A DNA stretch of 28,492 nt from Andalucia godoyi And28 (GCA_009859145.1 VRVR01000019.1:1-28492), one strand, 5' to 3'; shown: positions 188 to 24,987, numbered from the stretch's first letter. Numbers and translations are program-made. The notes: generated by a model from the sequence alone, not told the origin.

Positions 188-2071
188 GAAGATGCAGGAT
201 GTTCTAAGACAAATCATTATGAAGTTGGCATGGTTGTTGCGACCTGCAAGTACCTGCTGCAACAAGAGTACAAGGACGACCAACTTGTTATCCTTACGCC
301 GTATTTAGGGCAACTGCAACTGATTCGTGCAGCTCTACGAGCGGAATTTGACGTCACCATTAACGATTTGGATACTGAGGATTTGATCCGCGCCGGCGAA
401 AACGTAGATCAAAGCGGCAAAGCCTCCAACAAACGACCAAAAATCTATGTTGCAACCGTTGACAACTATCAGGGCGAAGAAGCCGACATTGTCGTTGCAT
501 CTCTGGTCCGCAGTAATGTCTCACGCTCCATCGGATTTCTCGCAGAACCTGAGCGGGTGAATGTACTTCTTTCACGTGCTCGTTTGGGGATGATTTTGTT
601 TGGCGACATGGAAACCTTGACAAATGCGTCTAATCGGAAAGGCGCAGAATTGTGGAAGAAGATTAACTATTTTCTGTCGGACGACACGCGTCGGTCCGTT
701 GTGAGCGGTCTTCCTGTAAGGTGCGATAGGCACCCGGCCCAGCTAAACTACTTGGCAACGGTGGACGATTTCAAGAAATCCGCTCCTGATGGAGGGTGTT
801 TGTCGTCGTGCACATATGTGTTTGAGACTTGTGGCCACAAGTGTGGACGCAAGTGTCATCGACTTGAAGGACATGAAAGTGTGCGGTGCACTTCCGATGT
901 GCGGTCAACCTGTGAAAAGGGTCATCCTTTGCATTTCAAGTGTCACGTAGGACGTCCTTCAATATGCAAGATTTGCGAGAAGCTCCAGGCGGCGGAAGAA
1001 AAGCGGAAGAAAGCGGAAGCGGAAGAACAGCGCAAGCGTGACGTTGAAGAGGCAGCATATAGAGTGCAACAAGCGGAACGAGAAGCAAAGCTGCAAAAAG
1101 TGATTGCTGACATTGAGAATGTTCAGATTTCGGAGCGTAGGAAGCTTCAGGCAGAGCGACTACGGCTTGAAACAGAGATTCAAGAACACAATTTGAAAGT
1201 GGCGAAGGAGCAGCTTCCTGCTCAGACCGATGAAGAGGTCAAACAAATGAAGGAAAAGGCCGAACAGCGGAAGCTTCAAGCTCGCTCTGCTGCTTCTCGC
1301 AACAAAGAGAAAACACCCTGTGCACAAGATACAGGAAAAGGGCGTGTTACAATGGCTACTTCGCAACAACATAGGCAGAGCGGTGCCCCACAACGATCGA
1401 GTGACAGGCCTGCCTCCGAAGGCATGCAGATGTCTACCAATGTTCGCATCGATAATGATACCACAGATTTCCTTTCTTTCGTAGTAGCCGGTTGTGGTTT
1501 GCCCAAGGACAACGCGATTTTGTCGTTTGTGACCGACTGGAAATTTACAGAATTCCGCGAATGTCCTGCATTTGCACAAGTTGCACTTTCGCCCACAATG
1601 AAGACCGTGCTTGAAAAATGCGCTCAAAACGAATGGAGGGCTGCCTTTAGTAGAGCCGGAAAGATGAGTCGAGCAACCGCACCAGATCTGCAGTTGTTTT
1701 TGATGCTGTGTCGGTCAAAACTCAATGACGACAGCTTGCCAAACAATTTGAACGAAAGAAAAGAGATTATTGCTTCGTGCGATAAAATCTCTGGAATTTT
1801 AGATCTTGTGTCCAGTGCCGTCCTTTTGCAGCGGTTTGATGACAATGAGTGCATCCTACGAGGTGCTGTGTGTGCACTGGCTGCCAAAAAGCTTTTGACG
1901 GAAACGTCAGGACCATTCTTGGACCACATCACCGGACTTCCCTCGTCGGTGATGGATTTGTTCAAGAATTTGTGTGATGAAGTCTTGACGGTAGCAAAGC
2001 AGAAATTCAGTCCATCTACTGACACTTCACGTCCGTCAGATCGTGCAGTAAGCAGCGCATTCGCCAGGTGA
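188..2071 (+). pseudogene. 5'-truncated UPF1/ZNFX1-like SF1 helicase C-terminal lobe + NF-X1-type Cys/His-rich zinc fingers + coiled coil (N-terminal part of a helicase-NFX1-CbxX gene)
   Basis: Frame is open from 188 (EDAGCSKTNHYEVGMVV...), upstream of the ATG at 230. AAA_12 motifs: SKTN..E, ILTPYLGQL, ATVDNYQGEEADIVVASLVRSN, IGFL..PERVNVLLSRAR. Followed by CGHKCGRKCH and CEKGH-type Zn fingers and an E/K/Q-rich coiled coil. The N-terminal ATP-binding lobe (Walker A/DEAx) is absent. Ends at TGA 2069-2071, in frame with the next ORF. Confidence 0.88.
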
Positions 2072-2122
2072 TCGGAAGCAAAGACAATCAAAGGTGCAGC
2101 GAGCAAGGCACTTGACAAATTG

Positions 2123-5074
2123 ATGGAGTTAATTGGAGTCGAAGACATCAAGATGCAGTTTCTTGATATGTATGATACAATTTTGCTTGACAAGTCTCGC
2201 AGTACGAACGGGAAACCTTCCATCGGACGTCGCAGTCTCATTCTTACCGGGAATCCCGGTACTGGAAAAACGACCATCGCTCGGATCTACGCAGAATTCT
2301 TGTCAGAACTGGGCATTCTTCCTGGAAAGGCATTTGAAGAAACGACTGGTGCAAGATTGGTTGATGATGGAATCGATGGGTTGAAAAAGGTTATTGCAGC
2401 TGTGGAGAAGGGAGGTGTTTTGTTCATCGACGAAGCGTATCAACTTAATCCTGGACAGGATCGTCAAGGTGGCAAGGTTTTGGATTTGCTTTTAACAGAA
2501 GTAGAAAACAAGAGAGGTACTATGGCCGTTGTGCTGGCTGGGTACAAGGGTCGAATGGACAAGCTCTTGGAATTCAACGAAGGACTTCCGACGCGGTTTC
2601 CAACGGTTATGAATATTTCCGATTTCGACGATTCCGAATTGTTAGTCATTGCCAAAGGACATCTGTCCAAGCAGCAGAATGGCAGATATCACCTTGATGA
2701 TGAAAAGATCATGCGCATTCTCTCTCGTCGTGTTGGTTACCTTCGCGGACGTGAAGGGTTTGGTAATGCGAGGGCCGTCGAGAATGCAATCGAGAAAATG
2801 TCGCAACGACAGAGTCGGAGAATCGTCAGCTTGCGTTCGAAGAACGAGTTTCCGGACGAATGGCTCATTACCATGTCGGACGTGGTAGGGACTGACGGAC
2901 ACCCAGTGTTGGATGACATTCCTGCTTGGCGTCGATTGCTTGCAATGGAAGGGCTTGGCGAGGTAAAGGACGCAATTCGTGGAATTGGTAGAGAGATTGC
3001 AGGAAATTTTATTCGAGAACAGAAGGAAGAAAAACTGGCCGACTTCTTTCTGAATCGAGTATTTCTCGGGAGTCCTGGAACTGGGAAGACGACGGTTGCA
3101 AAGTTGTTTGGAGAAATCATCTGTGGTCTTGGTCTTCTCAGCAAGGGCGACTTGATCGTCAAGAAACCTGCCGATTTTCTCGGTGGAGCATTGGGTGTTT
3201 CGGAACAGCAGACCAAGGCGATCCTGAAAGCGGCCGAAGGTTGTGTTTTGGTGATTGACGAAGCCTACGGGCTTTGTCCGATCGCAGGTGGCAAGAACAG
3301 CAATATCGCAGGAAGTACTCCAGATCCGTTCAAGGTCGGAGTTATAGACACTATCGTGGCCGAAGTCCAGAATACGGCCAGTGAAGACCGATGTGTGATT
3401 CTCTGCGGGTATTCTGATGAAATGGAGCATCTTCTTCGGGTATCGAACCCGGGTCTTGCACGTCGTTTCCCCCTCGAAAAAGCATTCTATTTCGCAGATT
3501 TTACCGAGGATGAGTTACTTCGGATCTTCAACAACAAGGTGCACCAGCTGGATATCTTGGTGTCGACAAATGTTCAGCAAGTGGCGATCGAGGAACTAAA
3601 GAAGATGAAGCGCAAGGCCAACTTCGGAAACGGCGGTGCTGTGGACAACTTGCTTGCGAAAGCGAGAGAAAACTGTGCCAAACGGTGCAAGAACATGACT
3701 GTTTCAGAGTCTGTGGATCAGAGCAAAGTCCTTTTGGAAGAAGATTTTGTTGCTGGCGCCGCGCCCCGTCGATCTTTGGAAACCATTCTTGGAGAGTTGG
3801 TAGGATGCGATGATATCCGTACAAGGATGATCTCCATGAAACAAACAGTAGATTTCTGGAGGGACAAAGGTATTGATCCAATTTCCAAGCTAGCGCTCAA
3901 TTTCAGGTTTGTGGGCCCTCCTGGAACAGGTAAGACAACTGTTGCAAGAAAGATTGGTGAAGTCTTTTACACTCTTGATCTTTTGTCGTCCGCGGACGTG
4001 GAAGAAGTTACTCCCAGGGATTTGATTGGCTCCTTTGTCGGGCAGACCAGACCAAAGACGGAAGCTGTCATGGAACGTGCACTTGGTCGTGTTCTCTTTA
4101 TTGACGAAGCCTATGGATTGCATCCAAACAAGAGCTTGTACGGTACTGAAGCTCTCGAGCAGCTGCTGTCGATGCTAACAGATCCGAAGTACATGAGCAA
4201 GATGGTGGTGATTCTTGCCGGGTATGAAAAGGAGATTGACGAACTGTTGGACACAAATCCAGGACTGAAAAGCCGATTCCCAGAGCAAATTATGTTCAAA
4301 CCGTTGACAGAGCAACAATGTGTCCAACTGCTCGATAAGAAATTACAGACTGTTTCCTTTCAGATGGATGCAGGTGCAAGGGCAAAAGCGCAGGAAATTT
4401 TCCACGATCTTATCAACACTCTAAACTGGGCGAATGGCCGGGATGTCGAAACTGTCGCGAAGAAAGTTGAGCAGCACACTATCAACGTATCGGTGCCTGC
4501 CGACGAGGACGATGATGTGACGCATGTCAAACCGGATCATGTATCGCAGCCAATGCTGCGGTTTCTTCAAGAGCGACAGAAGAGCAGTTTATCTTCTGCA
4601 CGCACAGAGCTGCCCAACATTCTATCACAAGCGCAACAACAGCAAGTTATGCATCCCTCGTTGCAGCCAAAAATTGAGATCGCAAAGTCCACGCAAGTGC
4701 AATCCCGTGATGAGGATGTCAAGGAGGAAATGGAGAAGAGTCGCATGAGCGAGGATGGTTCTCCGGTTGCACCGTCATGGCTGCAAGATGGATTGCATAG
4801 TGCACTCTTGCATCTTGGAATGAACCGTGATGACGCGGTGAATCGACTGATGAAGGAAGAGGCAGATGAAGAGATTGCTCGCGAAGTGGCCAAGAAAACG
4901 AAGAGAGATCTCGAAACGGTGAAGAAGGAAATGGAAGCTATGCAGAAGGAAATTGCAACGCGCGTGCAGAGAGTGGCAAAGGTCCCGGTGATACGTTGTT
5001 TGATTTGCGGTAGTCCAAGCTGTCCTGTCAGACCCGCGGTAGTGGGATATTTGGAAGTGATGTTGCCAGCCTAG
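2123..5074 (+). CDS. Triple CbxX/CfxQ (SpoVK-like) AAA+ ATPase module; C-terminal part of the same gene as 188-2071
   Basis: Three Walker A motifs (GNPGTGKT, GSPGTGKT, GPPGTGKT), three Walker B motifs (LFIDEAY, LVIDEAY, LFIDEAY) and LAGY / NPGL..RF motifs; C-terminal CxxC..C. Same frame as the upstream ORF, separated by one TGA plus 17 sense codons. First ATG at 2123; ends TAG. Confidence 0.9.
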   Translation: MELIGVEDIKMQFLDMYDTILLDKSRSTNGKPSIGRRSLILTGNPGTGKTTIARIYAEFLSELGILPGKAFEETTGARLVDDGIDGLKKVIAAVEKGGVLFIDEAYQLNPGQDRQGGKVLDLLLTEVENKRGTMAVVLAGYKGRMDKLLEFNEGLPTRFPTVMNISDFDDSELLVIAKGHLSKQQNGRYHLDDEKIMRILSRRVGYLRGREGFGNARAVENAIEKMSQRQSRRIVSLRSKNEFPDEWLITMSDVVGTDGHPVLDDIPAWRRLLAMEGLGEVKDAIRGIGREIAGNFIREQKEEKLADFFLNRVFLGSPGTGKTTVAKLFGEIICGLGLLSKGDLIVKKPADFLGGALGVSEQQTKAILKAAEGCVLVIDEAYGLCPIAGGKNSNIAGSTPDPFKVGVIDTIVAEVQNTASEDRCVILCGYSDEMEHLLRVSNPGLARRFPLEKAFYFADFTEDELLRIFNNKVHQLDILVSTNVQQVAIEELKKMKRKANFGNGGAVDNLLAKARENCAKRCKNMTVSESVDQSKVLLEEDFVAGAAPRRSLETILGELVGCDDIRTRMISMKQTVDFWRDKGIDPISKLALNFRFVGPPGTGKTTVARKIGEVFYTLDLLSSADVEEVTPRDLIGSFVGQTRPKTEAVMERALGRVLFIDEAYGLHPNKSLYGTEALEQLLSMLTDPKYMSKMVVILAGYEKEIDELLDTNPGLKSRFPEQIMFKPLTEQQCVQLLDKKLQTVSFQMDAGARAKAQEIFHDLINTLNWANGRDVETVAKKVEQHTINVSVPADEDDDVTHVKPDHVSQPMLRFLQERQKSSLSSARTELPNILSQAQQQQVMHPSLQPKIEIAKSTQVQSRDEDVKEEMEKSRMSEDGSPVAPSWLQDGLHSALLHLGMNRDDAVNRLMKEEADEEIAREVAKKTKRDLETVKKEMEAMQKEIATRVQRVAKVPVIRCLICGSPSCPVRPAVVGYLEVMLPA

Positions 5075-5120
5075 ATGCTGTTTTAAAAAGTAGTGTATCA
5101 GGAACAACAACATAACAACG

Positions 5121-6521
5121 ATGATGATGATGAGGAAGGTGTCATCGGTTCGCCTGCGATTTCATCGATCGAGCAACCACGCCCTGCTTGAAGGGTCCAC
5201 AATTGAACTGCACGAGCATCGACTTTGGATCTATTGCCAGTGGTGACAATCTCCTCGATTACTATGCAAATGCAAAACAAAAAGTGCTGCGCGTTCCGAA
5301 AGAGAGCTCTTCAAAGGTAAATTTACGCCCGAGTTCTTTCCGCGGCGGTTCTGTCTGAAAGACGACATGTACTCCCAGCATCCAAAGATCTTGCGCGAAC
5401 TGATTACCTGGATATGCGATCGGTACCAAACATCCGGAGTGGGATACGCCGAGTTGTCTGTTGGCGCCAAAGACCTGGTGACGCGCCCCTGGTTGATGAA
5501 GCATCTTACCTTTCGTCCTCCAGATAGTCGTGTTCGACTGCGCTATCTGGCAGCATTGCAACGAAAATTCAAGGATGCAAAACGATTGACTCCGCAAGTC
5601 ATGAACGACCTTGGAATTCCAACGTATCCAGCGGGAAATCAAACATCGGAAGATATTGGTGACTGGGTAACGACCGTCAAAGACAGGTTGTCGCCTCAGA
5701 ACGCGAATCATCAAGCAATGTTTCAATCCGAACCCGTTGTAATGTTGGAGGGCATCCGCCGTGCTTTTAATCTTTCTCGGAACACCGACGTGGAAGACCT
5801 TGACTTGCGCGAGAAGCTGCTGCACAACTTCTGTGTGGGGTTGGACTATGTCGGCGACGAGTGGCAGCATCCGTTTTGCCCATTCGATCTTCCAGACTTC
5901 GTCACGTTTCTGCTCAACGAACGCGCGCTTCGACAAGGACACTTTGGCTTCCGATTTCACTGCGGCGAGTGTGACGAGGATTTTGTGACGCCGCAGTTGC
6001 TTGCCCATATGACCATCTCTGCCAACGTCATTCTGAACATCCTCAAAGCCGTGAAAGACAGTGAGTCCGAAAAGTCTCTGCCTGAATCCAAACCGCCGCC
6101 TCTCCGAATCAGCCACGGTGTTGCATTTCGCCACTTTTTGAACATCCCAGATGAAGATGAATCGCTGCGTCGCCACTCGACCATCATCACGAAGGCACTG
6201 CGCAAGATGACGAAACACAAAGTCCCGCTCGAACTTTGTGCTTCCAGCAACCTGTTTCTGGTACAATCGGACCCGGAGCTGCGCAAACCGCTGTTTCACG
6301 CTTCTCCGACGTTGCCGCAACCTCGTTGTCTGCTCGCCACCGATGACGACGGAATCGTCCCCGTCGAGTATTTGTTCTACGTGTCCGTATCCGCCGAGTA
6401 CGCAACCATCCTGTTTTCCCGAAAAGCGAATGGGAGTCAAGACGATCATAACAGTCTCATTTCCAACAGCGCACTCATCGAAATGCTCGAGACTGCCTCG
6501 GCCTCGCGCTTTGGGATTTAA
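5121..6521 (+). CDS. Adenosine/AMP deaminase family amidohydrolase (core ORF 5367-6521; 5' part 5121-5366 disrupted)
   Basis: GYAELS, FRFHCGE (metal His + catalytic Glu), RISHG, PLELCASSN and LLATDDDG match the ADA/AMPD motif series. The first metal-binding HxH (IELHEH, 5202-5219) lies upstream, in the same frame but behind TGA 5244-5246. Confidence 0.85.
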
Positions 6522-6577: not shown

Positions 6578-9500
6578 TTAGAATGGATCGTCGGCAGCTT
6601 CTGTTGCCGATCGTGGCGACAGTAGGTTTGGATCCGTGTTTCCCTTTGGCCACAGCTCTCGAGGCTGAGTAAGGCCACCAAAAAGCTTCTGCATGCGAAG
6701 GACTTCTCCGATCATGGTCCACACGGGATATGCATAGGCCAGCACGTCTTGGGCAGATTGGACGAACTTATCCTCCATACCAAGCGAATGAAGACCCACA
6801 ATCACGCCTCGCAGCAAATCCGTGTACTCGGTGTTCTTTCGAAAATTCGCATCCAACACGCGGTCGATAACCCACACCGCACCCGAGTCGCCCGGAGCGG
6901 GTATATATCCCTTGGTCTTATCCTCACGTTTGCGACAAGCCTTGCAAGGAGGCGAAACAAAAGGATACAATTCCAGGCCCGGTGGATGATCGATATCATC
7001 TGCGCTGATGACTTGCAGAACGGCAAGAGTCGTCCCTGTCGTAATTCCTTTTTTGCAGCAAACTACTTTGCATCCGCGATCCTCTTGCAAGTACCGCAAG
7101 CCCCGTTGCAGCAACTCTGCAGCAGTTTCAGATGGCCAATAAGGTTCAGAAACCGTTTCTTGGGATTCAACGTCACGAATTTGGAACACAAACGGCTGGA
7201 TGAAATCGTGATACTCCATCGGGATAGGGATGAATGCAAAGTCGTGGATCAACTTATGAGATTTCACCGACGATGCTTGCACTTCGACAGTGTGTTCCAC
7301 GCCATACAGATGAACCTTTTGATCGGTCAGGCAGAAATGAAATGCGTCGGAAAGAGAGATGCAACACTGCGCAATAAGCACTTTTGAAGACTCGGCTTTG
7401 GCTTCTCGTGTTGGCGTAGATGAATTCACATTTCTCATCACCGAAAACACACGAGAAACGGCAGACGATAGCCCCAATATTCGATCCAAAGGGAGAAGAA
7501 CATGTCCAGCAGTGACTGCGTAGATATCGTTCTGCTCTTCACCCAACGACACAAAACCCCCCACCGACGCAATATCGGCCCCTGAATTAGCATCGATTCG
7601 GACACAATGCGGAAAATGATTGACGATGGATCCTCCAATCTCTCTCGAATTGTCTGCGCTATGAACAGCCTGTGGGACAAACTTTGCCGAAACCACGGGA
7701 ATATTGATGCCGAATCTCCCCGTCTTCGAGTAACTCATCAGTTCAATTCCATACAGCTCCTTAAAACTGACGCACATTGAATTCAACAGCGCTACGCCAG
7801 ACTCTTTCGCAATGAACGGAGTCAGACACTGGAGACACAGAGTTCCGTCTTTGTTGAAATCAAAGGAACGAACAAGAATGTCCGCATTACCGACTTTGAA
7901 ATAATGGCCATGCTCAATCAAAAAATCCTCAAGATAGGATACGTTTGTGATTAATGACGAAGGCCGAACTGTAAGAGATGAACCGTCATGAGCAACCAAC
8001 AAACGATCCGATGGGACGACGCCGGAATTCTCTTTTTCGAGCCCCAACATACGCTCGCGTAGTATGTAATCTTCATCAGTTGCGGATATGGACGGGATTC
8101 TGCGCAGTTCCTCGGCTGGCAAAAAATAGGAACGGTATTGTTCGAATCCCAAGTCCAGTTTCAGCAAATGCCGCAATAAAACGTACGAAGAATAAACCTT
8201 CTTGTGACTCGGACCGCGGAATGCCAATATCGAACGACCAAATCGGTGACACTTTTCCCAATCCGAGTCCAAAACTAGACAACCAGGTTTGATACGTTGC
8301 ATTGCTCGCTTCAAAGACGCCTCCCATTCCACCAGCGGCTCTTTAAAATCCAATAACTTCGAAAGAACTTCTGCTAAATTGTTGAGATCCGGAACAACAG
8401 ATTCCAGAGAAAACAACACCCTGAAGGACGGATCTGTAAACGGGTCCTCAATTTGATCTTGAAGAATTCGCGAAAAAGGAATGGATGGGGGTCTGAACAA
8501 CGCATCCATAAATCTCTGAACCCTAATCAGACGGGTTTCAGGACGATCAGCCTGAGGATCAGACTTGAATCTCTGTTGAACGGATTGGCGAGCGGTGACA
8601 ATGACATCGTCGATAACCTGCGCTACATGCAAAGACATCCCGAGATATGCGTCACTTGTAATCTCATCATCGAAATTTGGAGAGAAAACTACTCGTTCCC
8701 GAAACTGGGAAGATAACCATGTTTGAAGGGATGTAAAACCCTCTCGAGAAAATTCCTTATAATTCAAGACAACATTCTCGACCAAAGATGAGAGTTGATC
8801 GGAAGTTCCTCGAAACAGCATTTCCATAAATCCGGGCATTGCAAAGATGGCCGTCCAAGTTTTTTGAATGGAAGTCTCCGACGAAGGATCGTATTTCAAT
8901 ATTGTGGAGAAAATGTGTTCACAATGACTAACAAACAGGTTTTCCAACTTGGCGCATAAACGTGCTCTTGCACTGTTTTGCAATTCCATCAAAGAAGCAC
9001 GAAATTTGACATCTTTCTTGGAATCCAGCTTCTTGAACACCCGCATCAACGACTGCAACTTGGTGACAGCTCGCTCGCAGTACTCAAGAATCTCCCTTAA
9101 CCTCGGATTGAACGAAGAGTTTAGCGCACTCATCAGAGGCACCATACCAGCGACACCACGGATATGGTCGTCGTTCTCCTCAAGAAGTCGACGAACTCGA
9201 GCGAGAACAGACTTTGTGATAGCCCCTCCTTCGGACACCAGCTCTTTGTCTACAAGGTGAAATAGCGCATTCACAGTGCAAAACAAGCTTTCATCAAGCT
9301 GAACTCCGAGTCTGCGGCAAAACTCGGCTCTGAAATTCTGTTCCACCGGGTCAATGTCATTGTCAGGTACTTCTGAACGCTCCAGCACTTTGACGACAAC
9401 TAAATTCGCAAGTAAATCGGAACGATCTGGCCGTCGAAGGAACTCCACGAGCGATGAAATGTGAACATCGTCCGAAGACTGCGAATACTTCATGACAAAC

Positions 9501-10468
9501 GCCGCACGATGAACCGTACGAAGAACATTCGCAATCGCATAGTGGCCCAGAAAGTGCTTGTCTCCGGTACCAGGCATGTCAATCAGGCACATTCCATGAG
9601 GAACGAGTGCTCTGTCAAATCTCCCGCGCACCGTAATCTTTTGCAGGAACAACGCTTCGATAGGCACGTTTCTGGAATACTCGCTGTTCTCACCGCGCAC
9701 AAGCTCTGCAAGGACAGCAGTTACGGATTCAATGGCCAGCCCATCGCGGTACTTGTAAGCTCGTTGATGCTGGAAGACGTCGACTTGCCGCTGCAACTGC
9801 GGAAAAGTAGGTACTTCGCAGTCGTCGTCGCACAGCGATCCAAATACGACATCCTGCCAGGAATTGCCCAGAAGACGGCGCAGCAGACCCCGAAGATAAT
9901 CGGCATCGACATGGAAGTTCAGGATCGGCTTTCCATCTGCGTCCTGAAAGTCGGATTCTCCCCAGCTCTTCCAAGCCGACGTTTCAGAATATGCAGAACC
10001 ACGAATCTGTTTCTTAACATACTCGTTCAGCTCCTTGGTGAGAACGACACGAGCGGCCAAAAGCAAATCCTTCATGACTTGATCGACCGAGAAGAAATCG
10101 AGTTCGAGAAAGTACTTTTCCGAAACTTTCCCCTGCGAATCAAGGATTTCCTGCCGAAACAGTGCGACGGGTACGTGCGTGGTTGCCGACCGGTCGTCTG
10201 AGATTGGCAAGAGTTTCGGTTCACCAAACAGCGCGTTGAGCAGGAAGCTCTTTCCCGCATTCGTGATGCCGAAAAACGCAACACCGGCACTCTGTCCATT
10301 GAGAAGATTGTCGAGGGGGATGAGGACATCGCGGCGAAGTGAATTCGTGACGACTTCATCGTGACGCGTACAAGCCAAAATCTGCGGGAGCAGTTTGGAC
10401 AGGGACAGCAGCCGCGAAAAGGTATCTGACGCAGCCGAAGCCGGGCTCAGCATCGCTGGATCCGACAT
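6578..10468 (-). CDS. Dynamin-like GTPase fused to a C-terminal trypsin-like serine protease (1296 aa)
   Basis: N-terminal GITNAGKSFLLNALFG (G1), ATT (G2), LIDMPGTGD (G3) with the long G2-G3 insert typical of dynamin_N domains, then a helical region. C-terminal SVGGFV...YAVTAGHVL (His), HDFAFI (Asp), PGDSGAVW (Ser). Uninterrupted ATG-to-TAA ORF. Confidence 0.85.
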   Translation of the reverse strand: MSDPAMLSPASAASDTFSRLLSLSKLLPQILACTRHDEVVTNSLRRDVLIPLDNLLNGQSAGVAFFGITNAGKSFLLNALFGEPKLLPISDDRSATTHVPVALFRQEILDSQGKVSEKYFLELDFFSVDQVMKDLLLAARVVLTKELNEYVKKQIRGSAYSETSAWKSWGESDFQDADGKPILNFHVDADYLRGLLRRLLGNSWQDVVFGSLCDDDCEVPTFPQLQRQVDVFQHQRAYKYRDGLAIESVTAVLAELVRGENSEYSRNVPIEALFLQKITVRGRFDRALVPHGMCLIDMPGTGDKHFLGHYAIANVLRTVHRAAFVMKYSQSSDDVHISSLVEFLRRPDRSDLLANLVVVKVLERSEVPDNDIDPVEQNFRAEFCRRLGVQLDESLFCTVNALFHLVDKELVSEGGAITKSVLARVRRLLEENDDHIRGVAGMVPLMSALNSSFNPRLREILEYCERAVTKLQSLMRVFKKLDSKKDVKFRASLMELQNSARARLCAKLENLFVSHCEHIFSTILKYDPSSETSIQKTWTAIFAMPGFMEMLFRGTSDQLSSLVENVVLNYKEFSREGFTSLQTWLSSQFRERVVFSPNFDDEITSDAYLGMSLHVAQVIDDVIVTARQSVQQRFKSDPQADRPETRLIRVQRFMDALFRPPSIPFSRILQDQIEDPFTDPSFRVLFSLESVVPDLNNLAEVLSKLLDFKEPLVEWEASLKRAMQRIKPGCLVLDSDWEKCHRFGRSILAFRGPSHKKVYSSYVLLRHLLKLDLGFEQYRSYFLPAEELRRIPSISATDEDYILRERMLGLEKENSGVVPSDRLLVAHDGSSLTVRPSSLITNVSYLEDFLIEHGHYFKVGNADILVRSFDFNKDGTLCLQCLTPFIAKESGVALLNSMCVSFKELYGIELMSYSKTGRFGINIPVVSAKFVPQAVHSADNSREIGGSIVNHFPHCVRIDANSGADIASVGGFVSLGEEQNDIYAVTAGHVLLPLDRILGLSSAVSRVFSVMRNVNSSTPTREAKAESSKVLIAQCCISLSDAFHFCLTDQKVHLYGVEHTVEVQASSVKSHKLIHDFAFIPIPMEYHDFIQPFVFQIRDVESQETVSEPYWPSETAAELLQRGLRYLQEDRGCKVVCCKKGITTGTTLAVLQVISADDIDHPPGLELYPFVSPPCKACRKREDKTKGYIPAPGDSGAVWVIDRVLDANFRKNTEYTDLLRGVIVGLHSLGMEDKFVQSAQDVLAYAYPVWTMIGEVLRMQKLFGGLTQPRELWPKGNTDPNLLSPRSATEAADDPF

Positions 10469-10947: not shown

Positions 10948-13161
10948 ATGTCTGCAGCGTCGTCTACTGCCTCACAAGTGGAGAGAGTGTTAACCGAGTT
11001 GCAGTCAGGAAGATTCCCTAATCTTCTTGTCTTTGCTAGCCGCTGCCGGAGTGTGTCCTCGCGGGAAATCCGCAAACTGCAGAATTCATGGAAGGGTACT
11101 CGAATTGACATGCCAGTATGGGTTATTCCGTTGTGTTGTGTTTACCAAGATACTGGAACAAGACCCTTGTGTCTGCGTTTCAATCATTAGAAGGGCTTCG
11201 GATGCGGAGACGTCGAATGTACGTATGAACACATGTGCATGGTTTGCGGCAGCCTCGACCACGGTATGCATAGCAAGCGCACTGATGGAACAATGCTACT
11301 GCAATGCGGAGAACATGCATTACTGAAACAACAGTTCGAATTGATGGAAAACAACGGTTTTCGTTTGGAACATATACTGGAAGCAATCAGATCTGAAAGA
11401 TTCGTTGCAATCTTTCGAGCCCCAACTTCTTCGCAGATGTCCCCTGCTCGACAAGTTAGTGCTTCTCCGACGATACGTCCGCCTTTATGCGCTACTGGTT
11501 CAACTGGATCAATTTCTTCACCATTGTCTATGACCAACTCTACGAACAATGTTGCCGCTTCAGAAATGAATTCATCCTCCAACATTATGCCACCGCCAAG
11601 AGATGGGGACATGAATGCCAAGCGCAGCGATGAGGACGTCGATGATCACGATGCACAGCCTTTTGTGTACTCCATGTCCCGTGGAGAGAATGACGTCTTT
11701 GAATTGCAGTTGAATATTACGTTCACTCGTGCAAATTGCATTGCCCACACAAATCTGTCGAAAGTTTGGCGTTGCAGTCTCACGTCACCATTGTTTTCTT
11801 CTCCGCGTCCCATGGCGATTAAAATGTGGGAACAATCTTTCACAGCAAAACGAGAACAAGTTGCGAAGGATCTTCAAAAATTGCAGCGAGAGATTATGTC
11901 AATTCGCAAGCTTTGTGAAGAAACTCCACATGTGGTACGGATTGAGAGCTCTCCCACAAAGCTGCGAATCGGACCGAACACATATTTTTGCCTTTTGATG
12001 GAACTTTGCAAGCAGCCTCTCAGTCAATATGTAGTCGATACCCACTCTCGGTCAACGATGGATCAGTTTGGCGGACTTGCAAACAGCTCACCCGATGTTC
12101 CTCGTCCCGACAATTCACCCTCCTTGCCTTCTCCATCGGTTCGTCTGCTCGATGACGCTCATGTTCGTTCGATCACCTCACAAATCCTGGCTGCAGTCGA
12201 TGCTTGTCACCGGGCACACATCTCTCACAGAGACATCAAACCTGACAATATTTTGGTGTCTTTTCAGCGAGCGGATGATGATCGGCCTCTCCTTAAACTG
12301 TGTGATTTTGGCTTTTCCAAGATCATTGACTGCCCCGGGACTCGTGGTGAAATGCAAACAGTTATTGGAACAGATTTGTACCGTGCTCCCGAGATTGATT
12401 TGAAGGGAAAATACGAAGTATCTGCGGATATGTGGTCCGTTGGGTGCGTTTTGTATTTTGTGTTGATGGGCGGCACTCATTTATTCGACCGACACCAAGA
12501 CGTTCTCGACGTTGCGAATACAAGTTCGCTGAGTGGAGATGGCCATTCACGTGGCGATGAAAAAGTCGTTGGTCTGCTGACCCGCCACATTGACATTCGC
12601 TTACAGGCTTCAGTGATGTTTGACTTGTTACGCCGCCTTCTGCGAATTGAGCCAACGTTGCGCATTCGCAGCTTCGAGGCTTGTAAACATCCTGCGACGT
12701 GGAGTTGGAAGCGCATGGTCAGTAACATTCGAGTGTTGGTTGATTGTTACAATGATAACGTACCGAGTGCGCTGCGCATTGTAGAACATGTTGAAAAACG
12801 GACTCCATCCGTGCTACATCATTGTGCTGGAGACTGGTTGAGCGAGTTTGATGACACTACAAAGTCAATTTTGACGTCGGTTTGGAAGAAGAATCCGAGG
12901 TTCCAACCTTCCACTCGAACAACAGTTTCCATATTGCTTCGACAAATCCGAAACATGGTTGTGCACATGTCGGAGTCGATGAACCAGTTGCCAGGGTTTT
13001 CTCCGGAAACGATTGCTCATGATCTCGGTCAACGTCTACTGCCCAGGTTCCCGCTGCTTATGCCGGCTATTTTCGATTCTCTTATGGACCCTGCTAACGA
13101 GCGCTTTGTTTCTCTCACTCCAGTTCCCGATGGATGGGAACTATCCTTGAAAAGTGAGTAG
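10948..13161 (+). CDS. Soluble Zn-finger - Ser/Thr kinase - KEN ribonuclease (IRE1/RNase L-like); core ORF 11233-13161, in-frame upstream part 10948-11190
   Basis: Kinase motifs MAIK, alphaC LQRE, HRDIKPDN, DFG, APE, DMWSVG. KEN-like tail HPATWSW...DW...LLRQIRNMVVH...RFPLL (compare IRE1 LLRAMRNKKHH). N-terminal CCCH + CxxCGSxxH. No obvious TM segment. One in-frame TAG at 11188-11190. Confidence 0.85.
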
Positions 13162-14135
13162 AAATATCATTGGTGGCTATGCTCCTTTCCACTTCGTTTG
13201 TTGTCTCAAAAATACCCTCGGTTGACCCCTTGTTTTCGTTTTTTATTTGCATTACCCGGTAAAACCAGGTTGGAAAACAATCGGATCCTTTTTTTTTGTT
13301 TGTTTTTTCCTATTTTTTCCTTTGAACCGTTGCAGTGGACAACACATATGCAAATACACTACTACATTCATTCCGCAAGTGGCACTTCCGGAGAGACATG
13401 ATCATTGAGACGACTCGGGAGACACGCGCGCCAGCACGAGAGATTTCCTGTCCTATATCTTCACGTTCATGATTCGTCAGCATGAGCATTTCGTCGAGTC
13501 TCGCACTCATTCAAAGCCGCTGCTGATCAAGAGATTCTCTCGGAGGACTAAAATGCAACCGTGGTGCGAACTGACAGGAACGTTAGCCATTCACTGCCCA
13601 CTCCTCAGTGGTTTCACTTCTGGAGAAACTTGCTGCTTGGCATTTTGGTAAATGATTGCCCAACGCGCCATCGGTTGTAACATCCATTTAAATGCAGAGA
13701 GGAAGAGCGAAAACGAACAAAACAATGACAAGGAATTCGATTTTGCTTCGACTGCCTGCAGAGGAGGTTTCCTCCAGCACAAGCAAGCATCTTGCACGCC
13801 TTCCTTGTCTAAGCAGGGACTGCATTAACGGTATAAGCAATTCTTCGTTTCCGGAGTTCCGTGATCTCTCCGTTTGTCTGCTGGGTCGCAAACCCCTTCC
13901 GCTGTCCCTGCGGGCTACCAGCTGCTTGAAACAAAGCCTGTCTCCATGTCCTGCCCCAGATACAGGGAGGCCGTTGCAATTCGTCGTCGATCGTGCATCA
14001 ATCGCAGCTTCCAACGGGGAACGATTGTTCTCTCCTCATTTCTCCAGTTTGCAAGCCATGCTGGCAACTCATTAAAATTTCTTCTTTGATGCTCATCACC
14101 TTCGATCTGCACCGTTAACTATTCAGAAGGTGGTC

Positions 14136-15131
14136 ATGATGAATGGATGTTTGGCTGAGATCACACTTGGATCATCCAGTCCCGGATCTCCAGTACCATC
14201 CGATCTCTACAGAATCCCGGCTGATATCTCGAATCTCCAACGATTGTGGGATGGTGCATTCAAGGAAACACCATGGATATTGAGACTTTTCCTTCGTATC
14301 ACGATGTTTTGGTGGAATAGATCGTCGTTCTGGTGGAGTTTGTCGTCGTTCTATGTTGAAATGTCGAGAAATGTCCACGGATTCATGGACGATGGGGCTG
14401 TGCATTCTTGCAGTTTGTGATTTATTGGGTATCAAGGGCAAGGCAATGACTGTCTGATTGCAGTCGGCATGACAGCGCATTTTGCCATGTACTGGTTTGC
14501 TAGTCTTCCGTGGGTCATGAAAGCTTTGTCTTTCTTCTGGTCTGTTCTAAGTCTGTGCCTTCTAATAATTGATTTCGGGAGGCGTCTTCGCGGGTCCTTG
14601 AAGTGTTTCGAAAAAAACTTCGAATTCCCGCCGGAACTAAAGATCGAATGGCACATTATGTCGAACACGGCAGATCGTTTGTCTAGAACTTGGTCTCCGT
14701 TGACATGTCTGACGTTCCTTGCGGTTTTCGTGATCTTACTCTTCAATTTGATTTCCATCCTCAAGAGCAATGCCGATATCTTCATCAATCTGGGGCTGAG
14801 CTTTCTCATTGCTGGAGGGATGATAGGTGCTCTTTTCGTATTAGCGATGCCGCACGCTATTGCAACGAGAGTGTTCGAGAATGTCGTCAATGCCAATGAC
14901 CTCAAGTTCATCGTTCAAGATGAAAAAAAGTTGACACAAAAAAAGCATGACAAGGCATTGAAGAAGCGTCAGGATCCCCTGCTGGAGGAAATCAGATCGT
15001 TCGCACAAAATCATCCCATCAGTCTGTCACTTGCAGGCTATTCCATGACGTTGAGAAAGGTGGCATCTATCCTTATCGGAACGTTAACACTGCTGATTTC
15101 CATATTGGCACTTCAGGGAGTGAAAGTTTGA
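14136..15131 (+). pseudogene. Degenerate multi-TM protein, paralog of 15587-16990 (GRL/7TMIC-like)
   Basis: Clear similarity to the minus-strand paralog (LPWVM...WS..SLC..IIDFG.RL; EWH....TA..LS.TW.PLTC.TFL; SLAG.S.TL..V..I..G.LTL..S.LALQG). In-frame TGA at 14418-14420 and an apparent internal deletion of the first TM helices. Confidence 0.75.
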
Positions 15132-15586: not shown

Positions 15587-16990
15587 TTATAGCCGTAGTC
15601 CTTGAAGAGCCAAGAAGGATACAAAGAGCGTTAATAAGCCCACAAAAATGGTCCCGACGCGTTTCAAGGTTATAGAATGTCCAGCAAGTGACATGAACAG
15701 AGGATTGTCTTTCAGAAGTCGTTTGACATCTTCAAGAGATTCGTCAACACTGCAGACATTCGATTTGAAGTCTGGCCCTAAATGACTCGGGCTGGAAGAT
15801 TTTGACGGGCATTGCTCGACATCCTTTGAAAGTAATTTGAAATGGGTATTGGATATTGCAGCCTCTCTTGCCCTTTCCGCTGTGGAATGGGGCAAGGCCA
15901 AGAGGAAAAGTGCCAGGATCATGCCAACAGCAATTATGGCACTCAGCCACAAGTCAAGAAGATTGTTCGGTCTGTTTTCCAAAGCAATGATCACATTGAG
16001 CAATAAGAATGCCGAACCTACCAAGAATGTAATGCACGTCAACGGAGCCCAGGTATAAGACAAATCCGACGCAGTTTTCAACAGAACATGCCATTCGGAA
16101 TTCAACTGCGAGAAAGCACTGCGTTCATGGGTGGAAATGGCCGTAGCGTCAAAAGAGCGTAATGCGTCTGTGAGGCGAGTTCCAAAATCGATGATAAACA
16201 TGCACAAAGAGAAAATGGACCAGATGAAACACATTGCTACCATCACCCAGGGCAGACCAACTAGCCAGTACATGAGAAAATAAAGCGTTACACGGGAAGG
16301 GATAACACAGTCCTTGTGATCTCCGTCGTACACAATGGCTCCGACGACCATGCCACCCATGATAATTAAAAAATGCCCAAGGAGAATGATATGTAGGCAT
16401 ATTCTGGTTATCCCCTCCGCACTACAAGCTCGAAGTTTTCTTTTTGAATCAAAAGTGGAATTGCGACTCATCATCGCGGCCATCTCCACGCGCCAGAACA
16501 ACGGGCTGCCGGTCAAACGAGCACCATACTTTTTGATCAGAGTATCATCATCCGTGAACTCTTTGGGAATCCGACAATAGAGCATCCACACCGGGAAAAA
16601 AACGGAAAATGTGGCTAAACAAACACACACACCACCAAACAACACGCCCAAATTGAACCATAAATATCCGCTCGTTGCTCCTTCCATGTTACAACCATAC
16701 ACCGGAACTATGTAGACCTGCATCAACCACACAACTCCAGTCCAGAATACCAGAAACAAAAACCTGCCAAGAGCCCACCACATCGACGAATCCACTCTGT
16801 TACCAGCGCCCTTCTTGAACGGACGATACCACCACAAGATGGCGATCCTCAAGTAGGAACGGAGCGACCAGGGCAGGTTGGAAAACACATTGTCCCACGT
16901 GTGCTCCAGAATGCCAGATGTGGTCTCTTTGCTGAAAGATCGACTGCTAGAACACGGAATAATCGAGGCCTGTTTTGTCTCGAGAGTCAT
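15587..16990 (-). CDS. Seven-TM membrane protein resembling gustatory-receptor-like / 7TMIC (DUF3537-like) ion channels
   Basis: 467 aa from ATG 16990. Seven hydrophobic segments by eye, a long TM4-TM5 loop ending EWHVLLKTASDLSYTWAPL, a short TM5-TM6 loop, and a terminal split helix MSLAGHSITLKRVGTIFVGLLTLFVSFLALQ. The CDS is well supported; the family call is tentative. Confidence 0.7.
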   Translation of the reverse strand: MTLETKQASIIPCSSSRSFSKETTSGILEHTWDNVFSNLPWSLRSYLRIAILWWYRPFKKGAGNRVDSSMWWALGRFLFLVFWTGVVWLMQVYIVPVYGCNMEGATSGYLWFNLGVLFGGVCVCLATFSVFFPVWMLYCRIPKEFTDDDTLIKKYGARLTGSPLFWRVEMAAMMSRNSTFDSKRKLRACSAEGITRICLHIILLGHFLIIMGGMVVGAIVYDGDHKDCVIPSRVTLYFLMYWLVGLPWVMVAMCFIWSIFSLCMFIIDFGTRLTDALRSFDATAISTHERSAFSQLNSEWHVLLKTASDLSYTWAPLTCITFLVGSAFLLLNVIIALENRPNNLLDLWLSAIIAVGMILALFLLALPHSTAERAREAAISNTHFKLLSKDVEQCPSKSSSPSHLGPDFKSNVCSVDESLEDVKRLLKDNPLFMSLAGHSITLKRVGTIFVGLLTLFVSFLALQGLRL

Positions 16991-17376
16991 TTGCCAAACA
17001 AGTGTTAAAAAGCACAATAACCGTGAGGAAATGAGGAGATTGTTGAGGAAAAGAGCTTGCAAACGTTGGTTGCCGACAGCAGAGACTGCCCCCTGGTATC
17101 GACAGCCTGACTTTTGGTCAATGCAGGGTCGCAGACTGGGATTTCCGGAGGTCTGTGATCCGCTTGTCGTCCGAGCTTCTGGGTCGAAGCAAACGGCCCT
17201 TCGGAAGTTTCGCTCAGTTGACGAATCTGGAACGTCGTGGGTGACAGCTGTGCAAGCAAACTGCGTTCCTCCTCGGAATAGGTGTTACACATTCGCCAGT
17301 CCCGCATTCCGCAAAAAAGGCCTTCAGTTTTCTCACTATTCTTACATGTTGCCCTCCGCGTTCGTTTCCATTTGCA

Positions 17377-18345
17377 CTACGAAACCATCGACGAACTTGT
17401 TCGGTCAAGATGGGGAGAATACCACGACACCAAGCTGGCCCAGGTCTCCGTCTTCGAGACGTGCTCTGGTTTGCGTGTCTTTGCATCGGTTTTTATGCGG
17501 TGTTTTGGTTCTATCCGACGCCATTCGAGTTGTGCGCGGACTGGCTGAGATCGTGGTATGCATTCGTTGTCCATCATGCACTCGACTGCAAGGTTCTTGA
17601 GTGCTTCGAACACCTGTTCAAAGTTGGAGTTGATTTTGAAGTCTGGTGGACAATGTGCCTCGTCACGATGTCGACCAGAGCTTTCAGCGACTATCTGGCA
17701 GTGTTTTGAATTCAACCGAGCTTCCGCAGTCCGAACGTCACTGTCGATTGCATTCGTCATTGCCCTCGCACTCGGATACGCTGTTTCTGTGAACATCGAT
17801 CTTGCAGGGTGGGAATTCTGGCTGAAACTGCTGTCGCTTGCCTTAGAGCTCGTCCAGTTCTTGTTTGTTTATGCTTGGCTCCATATCCCTTGGGAGTATG
17901 TACCAGCAAACAGAGAGCCCGTCGATGGCGTGCCCAGAGGAGTGAGGGACAACAACAACGCGTTTTTGGCCTTGTACAAAGCCATTTGCTGCGCCAGCAA
18001 CGGTGGAAAATGCTCCTGTTGGACACGGGACGCACAACTGAGAGCCGTTTGCTCCGGTATGGGGAGAGTACGATACAAGCGGACATGGCAGCCACGCGGA
18101 GGATGTGTTTATGCCGGAAACAGAGAAGAACGTTCCAGAAGGACACGGAAGGCAGAATCCGGATGCATTTGCTCCCGCAATTGTAGAAAACATTCCAGCC
18201 TAGCACGGAGTACACGTGTTGCTTGCGGTTGCATCGATCGTCGAGGAGTACGATCCAGGGGTGCATATGCTGCAGTCATTGTTGAAGCGGACCCATAAGA
18301 CCCCGCAGGACAAGAAGAGCACGAATTTCCCTGAACGTACTGCCA
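17377..18345 (-). pseudogene. Decayed Cys-rich repeat (GCC2/GCC3, ephrin-receptor-like CxxCPxGxYS) surface protein
   Basis: Tandem repeats CSSCPAGSYG, CSICTPGSYSS, CTPC*AGMFST, CLPCPSGTFFS, WLPCPLVSYS, CVPCPTGAFST. Frameshift near 18280 and in-frame TAG at 18200-18202. Including the 17377-17796 ORF as a tail is uncertain. Confidence 0.7.
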
Positions 18346-18789
18346 GGCAGCACACGATTATTTCATGACCTCTGCTTTGTTTTGTCCATGCAGACCCCGG
18401 TTTTGCAGAGAGTGGGGTGAAAGACGTTGCCATACTGGGCGACGAAAATCGCCCTCGTGACCGTTCGATTCTGTGCGACTTACGAATATTTGTCGATGGA
18501 TACGAAAGAAGAACCACGAGAACTGCGAAGTGAGGAAATGGAAGAGAGCAGCACCACAGCTTGTGCAGTCTAGATTCGTATTTCTTGTCATACTTGGCTC
18601 TGACTGGAGGTCGAGACCTCTCGAGTTGCGGAGCTGTTCTGCCACATTCGCAGGGTTCATCCCCATCCAGCAACATGCAGTCTGTTCAGAAAACCTCTGC
18701 CTTTGTTCAAGACTTTGTTGATCGTCATCAAGAGGAACAAACCAATGAAGGGCTGAGTAAGCAACAATCATGATGACTTGCACAAACTG

Positions 18790-21700: not shown

Positions 21701-22572
21701 CCCCCTGCAATTCCAATGCGATTCGCCGCTTTATCGTCTTTGGCAGATGCCATCTGACGTGCAATCGAAAAGCGCACCAATGATCTGGATAAATACCTGC
21801 AGATGGACTGCATGCGATGAGGAGTTAATGATAGACCAAGAGCAACTTCACTTAAAACTGAAGACTTGCGGTCTCTAATGAACTGTAACGGGTGGCTATC
21901 GGAATCATCAGTCTCGTCCGCCGTCATCAGACAGAAGTGTATTATTCGTAATCCGTCAAAGACGACTGGAACAGAATAGAACTCGCGGAGGAATAAACCT
22001 TCAGATGATAACAGCGTTGGATTTGGGAGCTCATCAAGACTCCCATGGACCGTAAGTACAGTGTGACCTCGTCTTGGGGACTCTGACAGTGCGTGCTGGA
22101 CAATTTGGAAAAAGGCAGGCAGAAAATAGGCAGTGTCCGATCCGAAAAACAAGACATCCCACTCTAGAGGTGCAAAACGTAAAGTCCAAATCATTTTGCA
22201 ATACAGCGAACGCCCAGGAAAGATCATCTCAGCATTCATAGTAACGCCATTCGACTGTACATTGAAGTTTCCGTCACTATCCAAAGTGACACATTCTGGA
22301 ACCGAGTGCGGAGAGAATGAAACAAGAAGAGGAATACCGACTGTCTCTGCCAACCATGGCATCTCTTCAAACGAGACATCAGGATTCCTACGACAGTATA
22401 TATCCAAAAGCACAACTCGGTGCGGCATCTCCTTCTTCCACAGTAGTAAGAAATCCAATGCGTCACCGAGGTTATCCTCTTCAGTTGAAATCACGCACAG
22501 CCTGTTCGTACCTGGGCCGCATGGAGTGAACACGAGACCTTTACTTGTGCCCCACTCCGGGAAATACGACAT
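18790..22572 (-). CDS. Roco-family Roc-COR GTPase with uncharacterised N-terminus and C-terminal CARD/death-fold-like domain
   Basis: VLFVGETRAGKTS (G1), STEVG (G2), VFDFAGQDLY...LFF...MYVLVFDL (Roc G3), WLQRI, VILAGT (G4), COR-like PVPLRY...LRALIESG...IRPIEFV. First ATG at 22572; the frame is open to about 22626 and a strong splice-acceptor-like tract lies just upstream, so the true start may be spliced. Confidence 0.85.
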   Translation of the reverse strand: MSYFPEWGTSKGLVFTPCGPGTNRLCVISTEEDNLGDALDFLLLWKKEMPHRVVLLDIYCRRNPDVSFEEMPWLAETVGIPLLVSFSPHSVPECVTLDSDGNFNVQSNGVTMNAEMIFPGRSLYCKMIWTLRFAPLEWDVLFFGSDTAYFLPAFFQIVQHALSESPRRGHTVLTVHGSLDELPNPTLLSSEGLFLREFYSVPVVFDGLRIIHFCLMTADETDDSDSHPLQFIRDRKSSVLSEVALGLSLTPHRMQSICRYLSRSLVRFSIARQMASAKDDKAANRIGIAGGMTVNSSDAVHHFSLNYVLRLPPDPSASFGLHLVVEQTVGEEGHDVFVRSFDYIVDSSAVLPGITLPHRISLINSLSDNDIRAQLACLLLSKLPPTRRRHKIPSKTLILSWDFGTVSAKLPRRRVLFVGETRAGKTSTIQLLRGVGKQQFCHTQEGTDDADRQSTEVGGVHMMEIAVGVDGRSWTDASSERGAAAGAVSLFLRSAARARNSTVSQSHSLSSSSSLSAVMRDSENAIMPDAVEGSADDSRQDRTARESPLASNGGIDDTLAEIRNAASHIQSSCISVFDFAGQDLYRCLDPLFFAPSSMYVLVFDLLSLCAKASVSADSLASEIDRCILSWLQRISSMLANAGSQPSQRSVVILAGTRGSQFKAHSSVDRVGNAVRDSIFKCRESFANLEVYVGVDNPSRARGDADVHPDRPFYVLENDPHLEGSGMYDDDRLKFMKSFSTFILRQFGDLVSASRPVPLRYLFLEAFVLQRQEWSARSVVSDQEILSYVVPALKLGSDAEARDALRALIESGSFFGFCSGNCMNGSAAEAVPETEAVIVIRPIEFVQRCAVLISHRFLRSSANGYLQPNSSFFDALWQRIGAIQEDEVRRILCVDPVSKDGLCDEEKNCLVSTLCLMGILIPIRVVQMHVTDHPPFFLFTPRLHILRTSNVVRDYLSEAAIDSTQLRSCSLAIQIQTRRGSEVPSVPTVSPHVFYRLCSFLHVAAQLTTEVLCIGDEVDPLASEFPIAEREIELVDDCSRHRVRIAIMPGGVNGPFFAVRLWRCAEAAPLPIIDLFKKLVSMDTGIPAGSMVVLGQSVKFGHENQLGFVAHGNARSVPLAQKPAFLQRMAQFDEYQKSEPKAAATSRSDAAPKEWTRQQLNDALQNNLAPFLKYFFNHFDTVFIAVVRALNSFDTGTADHVIAMGDRQAAVELWKRRVLLNPMVLKSQASKSPVQAFCAFLRLYPEVLREVADLLELPVFI

Positions 22573-23644: not shown

Positions 23645-23685
23645 GTAGGGAAAGAGAGCGGATGCACGAGCGGATGGAGCGCAAG

Positions 23686-24945: not shown

Positions 24946-24987
24946 CAAACACTTCTTCTGCTCCGCACAGCGCATCTGGCAGCCGTT

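Follow-up and report, generated by a model that had tools for sequence, protein, structure and literature searches.

Organization of the gene and its relatives

The stretch of DNA analyzed in this work (hereafter, the window) comprises 28,492 nucleotides from the jakobid Andalucia godoyi And28 (GCA_009859145.1, VRVR01000019.1:1-28492), and the gene under study occupies positions 6578-10468 of its minus strand. It consists of one open reading frame (ORF) that starts with ATG, encodes 1296 residues and ends with a stop codon at 6578-6580; its product is predicted to combine an N-terminal, dynamin-family-like GTPase domain with a C-terminal serine protease domain in a single chain. The list of ORFs of the window revealed no internal stop across these 3.9 kb, in agreement with the initial annotation of this DNA, which had claimed a single uninterrupted frame, and a chance ORF can be ruled out because 1296 codons are far too many for DNA of ~49% GC. 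In addition, sequence comparison revealed full-length collinearity with three proteins (P0002, P0003 and P0004), each encoded on a separate contig. We therefore read the locus as a single nuclear gene, on the grounds of its intact frame and its collinear relatives. No transmembrane-like segment was found in the 1296-residue protein, the highest Kyte-Doolittle mean over 19 residues being 1.52, and the product is predicted to be soluble.

A profile search covering all 1.84 billion representative proteins (E ≤ 1e-3) returned six matches. Besides the product of the window itself, two of them have the full architecture: P0003 (1173 residues, 36% identity) and P0004 (1186 residues, 24% identity), the latter with the same GTPase-to-protease layout and the motifs AVSAGH, RDFAF and GDSGA. 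P0005 (511 residues, from JGI/IMG) contains the G domain only and is possibly a fragment, and P0006 (778 residues, from a Logan assembly) has no protease. The outgroup P0007, a multi-GTPase protein that we take to be of the SLIP-GC-like type, is the nearest match from outside the family and scores strongly with Dynamin_N (143 bits). All family matches are unnamed in the databases, in line with the initial annotation, whose author knew of no characterized protein with this arrangement of domains. Nor did the architecture prove to be common: the sequence data indicate a real arrangement of domains, maintained at identities as low as 24%, that is very rare and has no annotation.

P0003 and P0004 lie on different contigs from a single JGI metagenome sample (3300042934), and on both contigs the neighbors are eukaryotic housekeeping genes. 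At the P0003 locus (L001) the N-terminus carrying the P-loop (2389-2790; P-loop part 2389-2770) lies in another reading frame than the rest of the gene (2781-6302), and for this reason the database protein lacks the G1 motif. This change of frame could be a frameshift, an error of sequencing or assembly, or a very short intron.

Among named proteins, the closest is P0002, the A. godoyi hypothetical protein ANDGO_07244 of EukProt, a database in which the product of the window is likewise present. The two paralogues share 78% identity over their full length, and this identity is unevenly distributed: it reaches 100% in residues 1-100 and 98-100% in residues 251-350, which together represent the core of the G domain, falls to 38-54% in residues 401-700 (with 76% in one block of 50 residues), and rises again to 76-82% in residues 701-850 and to 84-98% in the protease domain (residues 951-1250). 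Such a mosaic suggests that the two genes underwent ectopic conversion between chromosome ends, that their central regions diverged fast, or that both processes were at work.

The N-terminal GTPase domain and the central regions

Residues ~58-400 (9269-10297, minus strand) form a putative large G domain of a dynamin-family-like TRAFAC P-loop GTPase. Pfam MMR_HSR1 matched this region with 27-31 bits, above its cut-off, and Dynamin_N did so with 23.5 bits when the whole protein was used and with 27.6 bits when only the N-terminal fragment was used, the cut-off being 27; in the relatives P0004, P0005 and P0006 the Dynamin_N scores were 32.3, 28.7 and 24.3 bits, respectively. The G1 motif or P-loop, GITNAGKS (residues 67-74; 10247-10270), follows the pattern G.T.(A/V)GKS, which is kept by every relative having that region, including GITGSGKS at the P0003 locus. 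The sequence ATTHVP (residues 95-100; 10169-10186), with the dynamin-type T-x-x-P, is a candidate for G2 or switch I, and reads STT(H/R)VP in P0004 and P0005. G3 or switch II corresponds to DMPGTGD (residues 297-303; 9560-9580), in which D297, P299, G300 and D303 are invariant in an alignment of six sequences. The distance from the end of G1 to the start of G3 is 222 residues.

When the profile of the six G domains was compared with the PDB, it matched EngA/Der, bacterial dynamin-like proteins, mitofusins, HflX and IRG proteins over 25-50 residues around the P-loop only. PADLOC gave no significant match to a defense family; LeoBC alone was reported, with 16.8 bits at the P-loop (residues 63-97), and no stretch passed by itself. 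The gene is also distinct from AgDFP2, which the Andalucia genome paper presents as a "novel dynamin-related protein"; this candidate was rejected as it corresponds to gene _08796 and its sequence differs.

The G domain is followed by a variable central region (residues 401-720; 8309-9268, minus strand), presumed to be a helical stalk, which was delimited by its windowed identity to ANDGO_07244. It is the least conserved part of the protein, with 38-76% and mostly 38-54% identity to the paralogue, and showed no Pfam match. Next comes a middle domain of unassigned fold (residues 721-941; 7646-8308, minus strand), conserved in P0003 and partly in P0004. The initial annotation had described an unassigned middle domain of ~250 residues; Pfam indeed has no match to it, and its size is closer to ~220 residues.

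The C-terminal protease domain

The C-terminal domain (residues 942-1262; 6683-7645, minus strand) is predicted to be a PA-clan serine protease of the branch that includes rice NAL1 (NARROW LEAF 1) and alpha-lytic protease, with the residues of the triad conserved. This assignment draws on hhalign comparisons, profile searches, an AlphaFold2 (AF2) model and Foldseek. The complete His/Asp/Ser triad claimed in the initial annotation was recovered at the places it gave (~7505, ~7240 and ~6888): the putative catalytic His989 lies within AVTAGHV (residues 984-990; 7499-7519), Asp1076 within HDFAF (residues 1075-1079; 7232-7246), and Ser1195, together with the oxyanion-hole Gly1193, within GDSG (residues 1193-1196; 6881-6892). 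In a merged alignment of 21 sequences, His989, Asp1076, Asp1194 and Gly1196 do not vary, and 20 of the sequences retain Ser1195. The triad runs His, Asp, Ser, within xTAxH, D-hydrophobic and GDSG motifs, as is characteristic of the PA clan and of S1-like enzymes.

Two additional protease hallmarks that the initial annotation had not listed were found. One is KKGITTGTT (residues 1139-1147; 7028-7054), typical of the NAL1, alpha-lytic and streptogrisin branch, which aligns with KSG.xTG.T of a bacterial family described below and with GRSSGHTTGT of NAL1. The other is GLHSLG (residues 1225-1230; 6779-6796), which, judging by its motif, would correspond to the Ser214 strand in proteases of the chymotrypsin fold. 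All four eukaryotic members conserve the His, Asp and Ser residues, the oxyanion-hole Gly and the motifs on either side, even at 24% identity.

A scan of metagenomes with the conserved peptides GDSGA[VA]W[VI]I plus the His motif yielded a single locus of bacterial origin (L003, compost metagenome), which encodes a protein of 312 residues with GITNYHV, LDYATI, KSGIATGRT and GDSGAVWVID. This protein has 16 relatives in Pedobacter and in metagenomes, all of them "hypothetical", and a Pfam domain is found only in P0020 (PF25608). Together, these bacterial proteins (P0009-P0025) are the closest sequence relatives of the protease domain, with 35-42% identity over the second barrel. They are stand-alone proteins of ~300 residues with an N-terminal extension of ~95 residues and no GTPase, and have the H/D/S and TTG motifs in common with the domain of A. 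godoyi.

In three loci of Bacteroidota type the bacterial protease gene forms part of a two-gene module (L003, 5341-7262; L004, 6001-7907; L005, 6001-7945). The partner, located downstream and sometimes overlapping by 4 bp, encodes ~326-337 residues without a Pfam domain, and in L003 and L004 it shows a signal-peptide-like N-terminus. The module of L003 is surrounded by SRA-HNH, HNH and AlbA_2-like genes; the module proteins themselves are unannotated. The middle domain of the A. godoyi protein (residues 700-945) was also compared with the conserved operon partner and with the N-terminal extension of the bacterial proteins; both were rejected as counterparts, the hhalign probability being <0.1%.

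A profile built from the eukaryotic proteins alone aligned with one built from the bacterial proteins alone with an hhalign probability of 95.9-96.2% (E 2.5-5.5e-9), and a greedier alignment paired the His and Asp motifs too. Against the PDB, the bacteria-only profile identified rice NAL1 (E 6e-9) and alpha-lytic protease (E 8e-5), followed by Deg/HtrA proteins and arterivirus nsp4; the merged profile of 21 sequences gave E values of 4e-10 for NAL1 and 7e-5 for alpha-lytic protease. A galectin match to the C-terminal domain (E ~1) was dismissed as due to chance.

The AF2 model derived from the 21-sequence alignment had a predicted local distance difference test score (pLDDT) of 69.8 and a predicted template modeling score (pTM) of 0.78, and consisted of two groups of beta-strands (putative beta-barrels) plus a C-terminal helix, the stretches of low confidence being lineage-specific insertions. 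To reach this confidence it was necessary to add the bacterial relatives and to trim the sequences so that MAFFT aligned the His motif. With this model, the top 50 Foldseek matches in the PDB were all PA-clan serine proteases with a probability of ~1.0, among them Deg1, DegP, DegS, HtrA1, complement factor B/C2 and NAL1. The C-terminal region thus appears to model as a chymotrypsin fold, a check that the initial annotation had called for, and the predicted fold assignment holds. Among the viral models of BFVD, the named matches were serine proteases of the sobemovirus and barnavirus type and picorna-like polyproteins, and about half of the top matches were unnamed. As the viral structural matches were no better than the cellular ones, a viral origin of the protease is not favored.

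Genomic context

The window opens with (AACCCT)30 (positions 1-185), a telomeric repeat in which AAACCCT variants occur; the window therefore represents a chromosome end, and the gene is subtelomeric, at 6.4-10.3 kb from the telomere. The long uninterrupted ORFs of the window fit the published description of the A. godoyi genome as compact and intron-poor (PMC7050145). The neighbors are of eukaryotic type and include a protein kinase, a Roc GTPase, a triple-AAA ATPase and a fragment of a superfamily 1 (SF1) helicase.

The helicase fragment, ORF 230-2071 (plus strand), begins ~45 bp inside the telomere junction and comprises only the C-terminal half of an SF1 helicase, with positions 95-194 of the Pfam AAA_12 profile matched at residues 2-127. 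It is a helicase gene truncated by the telomere, and is reminiscent of the telomere-linked helicase genes of fungi. The next gene, 2120-5074 (plus strand), encodes three AAA domains plus AAA_lid_6 domains and has weak PADLOC matches to IetA and TRIP13. The product of 5367-6521 (plus strand; 384 residues) had no match in Pfam, PADLOC, NCBIfam or the PDB; its HCGE, SHG and TDDDG motifs, picked out by eye, raised the idea of an adenosine/AMP deaminase, which no tool supported.

On the other side, the kinase gene 11233-13161 (plus strand) is transcribed divergently from the GTPase-protease gene, with a spacer of 764 bp between them. It shows a Pkinase match of 127 bits and a weak C-terminal match to Ribonuc_2-5A (19.3 bits, below cut-off), a layout like that of the kinase-KEN part of IRE1 and RNase L, without a lumenal or transmembrane portion. 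Farther along lies an inverted pair of paralogous genes for proteins with multiple transmembrane segments. The copy at 15587-17062 (minus strand; 491 residues) is intact, and that at 14130-15131 (plus strand) is broken: it consists of two pieces matching residues 52-80 and 258-491 (40% identity, E 6e-56), without residues ~81-257 (the middle ~180 residues). Cysteine-rich C-x-PCP-x-G repeats, of the type found in protist surface proteins, occur at 17843-18676 (minus strand) split over two frames (17843-18193 and 18200-18676), which could represent either a frameshifted gene or one bearing an intron.

The ORF 18790-22614 (minus strand; 1274 residues) has a GTPase domain of the Roc (Ras of complex) type as its only recognized domain; it was considered as a paralogue of the GTPase-protease protein and rejected, being an unrelated Roc GTPase. 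Finally, positions 23000-27000 constitute a GC-rich block (58-60%, versus ~48% elsewhere), in which long ORFs overlap one another in different frames (23006-24295, 23578-24945, 24988-26211 and 26082-26963), and only the last of these has a Pfam match, to a PH domain.

The initial annotation had regarded the gene as intact among damaged neighbors, and hence as being under selection. Damage is evident in 230-2071 (truncated) and 14130-15131 (fragmented), but not in 5367-6521, 11233-13161, 2120-5074 or 18790-22614, which are long and uninterrupted. Since most neighbors are also intact, this contrast is weak evidence of selection. The collinear architecture of the family and the conservation of the triad at identities of only 24-37% constitute stronger evidence of constraint.

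Discussion

The sequence comparisons and the structural model described here point to a protein that unites a dynamin-family-like TRAFAC GTPase and a NAL1/alpha-lytic-type serine protease. Its novelty lies in the joining of two known superfamilies, of which one is present in the form of a branch that has no Pfam model. To our knowledge, no characterized member of the dynamin superfamily bears a protease, and no characterized chymotrypsin-fold protease is under the control of a large GTPase.

Several observations weigh against this reading. Direct searches of Pfam, NCBIfam and the PDB with the C-terminal domain, alone or as a profile of the four eukaryotic sequences, returned no protease; the comparison of the eukaryote-only profile with a NAL1 fragment reached a probability of 1.6%, with the TTG motif correctly aligned. 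The homology to known proteases is thus transitive, through the bacterial family. An AF2 model from an alignment of three sequences had a pLDDT of only 27.5, and the TM-scores of the Foldseek matches are modest (0.3-0.6). With respect to the N-terminus, the Dynamin_N match spans just positions 1-71 of the 168 in the profile, that is, its G1-G2 part. The canonical G4 motif, (N/T)KxD, is absent: at its expected position, NLVVVKVLER (residues 355-364; 9377-9406, minus strand), N355 alone is invariant and no family member has KxD, so that GTP specificity is unproven. Lastly, synteny is not kept in the metagenomic relatives, and given that these sit among housekeeping genes the "immune-like" neighborhood of the window may be coincidental. 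The dynamin-like GTPase of the initial annotation accordingly stands in part, as G1, G2 and G3 are in place and conserved, but the Dynamin_N score lies near the threshold and covers G1-G2 only, and G4 is missing. We consider the N-terminus to be probably a dynamin-family-like TRAFAC GTPase of unproven nucleotide specificity, and its membership in the dynamin family proper to be borderline.

The comparison with known systems is informative on both domains. Rice NAL1 (PDB 8HAT, 8PMM, 7Y77) is the best match of solved structure for the profile of the protease family, with which it has in common the set GTLG..TNHHV (His), D.A.I (Asp), G..TG.T and GDSG, and it also appeared among the Foldseek matches, at rank 21. 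However, NAL1 is a plant protein with an N-terminal and an ATP-binding domain and a D3 hexameric cage, and has no P-loop GTPase, unlike the jakobid protein, in which long insertions are found between His and Asp and ahead of GDSG. The alpha-lytic/streptogrisin branch (S1E), the second-best sequence match in the PDB, shares G.TTG.x.G, GDSG and the order of the triad; yet its members are enzymes that bacteria secrete and that have a pro-region and disulfides, whereas the domain of A. godoyi is the C-terminus of a presumably cytosolic multi-domain protein without a match to Pfam Trypsin. HtrA, DegP, DegS and Deg1 were the top Foldseek matches (E 4e-5 to 1e-3, probability 1.0), although their sequence similarity is marginal (profile E ~1e-3), and these proteases use PDZ domains where the A. 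godoyi protein has a GTPase.

The likeness to the dynamin superfamily lies in G1, G2 (T-x-x-P) and G3, and in a large G domain that precedes a long non-globular region. The missing G4, the insert between G1 and G3 and the C-terminal protease set the protein apart, and across the family the Dynamin_N match is limited to the first ~50-70 profile positions. A similar logic of nucleotide switch, peptidase effector and variable module is found in prokaryotic conflict systems that combine an NTPase with a protease (PMC7159879) and in Eleos (LeoA/LeoBC), but those systems are multi-gene and show no significant homology to the A. godoyi protein past the P-loop. As the word dynamin is absent from the survey of Kaur et al. 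2020 (PMC7159879), that paper describes no dynamin-trypsin fusion.

How the two domains might work together can be considered by analogy. The G domains of the dynamin superfamily dimerize and assemble upon nucleotide binding, and HtrA, DegP and DegS are activated by assembly or allostery. In the most economical model, binding of nucleotide by the G domain would lead to self-assembly, as in other members of the dynamin superfamily; the protease domains, brought close to one another in the assembly, would thereby become active, as in the NAL1 hexamer and in the trimers and cages of HtrA, DegP and DegS; and the variable central region would set the trigger, the recruitment or the target of the assembly. 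We put this model forward tentatively, giving it a little less than an even chance. Gating of the protease by GTP-driven oligomerization is plausible on the analogy of NAL1, whose activity depends on oligomerization: its hexamer keeps the His234 loop in place, and hexamerization is required for the active geometry of the triad (PMC12012508). As for the biological role, the least secure step of our proposal, regulated proteolysis in a rapidly evolving process, possibly defense or conflict, appears the most likely.

Proteases of this fold can also act on the chain that carries them, and the protein might cut itself once, in cis, so that the GTPase or the middle domain is set free or matured. Intramolecular processing is a known property of the alpha-lytic branch, the alpha-lytic-like capsid and polyprotein proteases of viruses perform a single self-cleavage, the viral structural neighbors of the domain are polyprotein-processing enzymes of sobemoviruses and barnaviruses, and the protease does lie at the C-terminal end of a long multi-domain chain. 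We nevertheless consider self-processing improbable, as no cleavage site came to light, the bacterial relatives, of ~300 residues, stand on their own, and NAL1, the closest sequence relative with a solved structure, acts in trans and depends on oligomerization. A catalytically dead pseudo-protease used for binding, or a decaying subtelomeric relic, could account for the lack of a direct Pfam match and would be in keeping with the truncated or fragmented genes of the subtelomeric region. The ORF of 3.9 kb is intact, however, and the triad, the oxyanion-hole Gly and the flanking motifs persist in four of four eukaryotic members at identities as low as 24%, which leaves this explanation with very little credence.

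The role of the protein admits other alternatives. Its P-loop region matched bacterial dynamin-like proteins and mitofusins, and Dynamin_N is at threshold, as might be expected from a dynamin-related protein engaged in fission or fusion of membranes or organelles, with the protease as an accessory, e.g. for quality control at the site. Against this idea, the protein has no transmembrane or strongly hydrophobic paddle segment, and the published survey of mitochondrial dynamin-family proteins of Andalucia names AgDFP1 and AgDFP2 and not this gene. Moreover, the family is present in very few organisms, which would not be expected of a core organelle function, and we regard remodeling as distinctly doubtful.

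A role as a cell-autonomous defense or conflict protein, with the GTPase as switch, the hypervariable central region as sensor of an invader or a selfish element and the protease as effector, would be compatible with the assembly-gated mechanism. In support of this idea, the protein recalls the interferon-inducible large GTPases as well as the prokaryotic NTPase-protease defense systems, and its P-loop gave the weak PADLOC match to LeoBC. The gene is subtelomeric, its paralogue has near-identical enzymatic domains and a central region mostly 38-54% identical, and one metagenomic sample contains several divergent paralogues (P0003, P0004 and P0005). Some neighbors belong to types common in immunity (a kinase with an RNase-2-5A-like domain, a Roc GTPase and a multi-AAA ATPase), and the bacterial relatives of the protease sometimes adjoin SRA-HNH, HNH or GmrSD genes. 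This evidence is wholly circumstantial, however: gene conversion plus relaxed constraint could produce the mosaic identity, the metagenomic relatives lie in housekeeping neighborhoods, and the Pedobacter locus has no defense genes. On balance, we view a function in defense as rather unlikely. A bolder version, in which the protein would found a new class of cell-autonomous proteins for immunity or conflict in eukaryotes, with dynamin-like GTPase switch, hypervariable sensor and NAL1-type protease effector in one chain and with paralogues diversifying at the chromosome ends of a deep-branching protist, is improbable. If true, it would provide a eukaryotic counterpart of the prokaryotic NTPase-protease defense systems and a protease-armed analogue of the GBP, IRG and Mx proteins.

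The family is tiny and lineage-restricted, and all that we propose past its architecture is inference. Even so, this work exposes a branch of proteases without a Pfam model that comprises the NAL1-like proteins, a small bacterial family and the protist fusions, and extends the range in which the NAL1 type, which is of agronomic importance, is known to occur. If the GTPase and the protease of the A. godoyi protein are functionally coupled, they would offer a compact, single-chain model of nucleotide-gated proteolysis. Furthermore, the subtelomeric site of the gene and the existence of a paralogue with a divergent center raise the possibility that early-branching eukaryotes may diversify such proteins in the way that immune receptors are diversified elsewhere.

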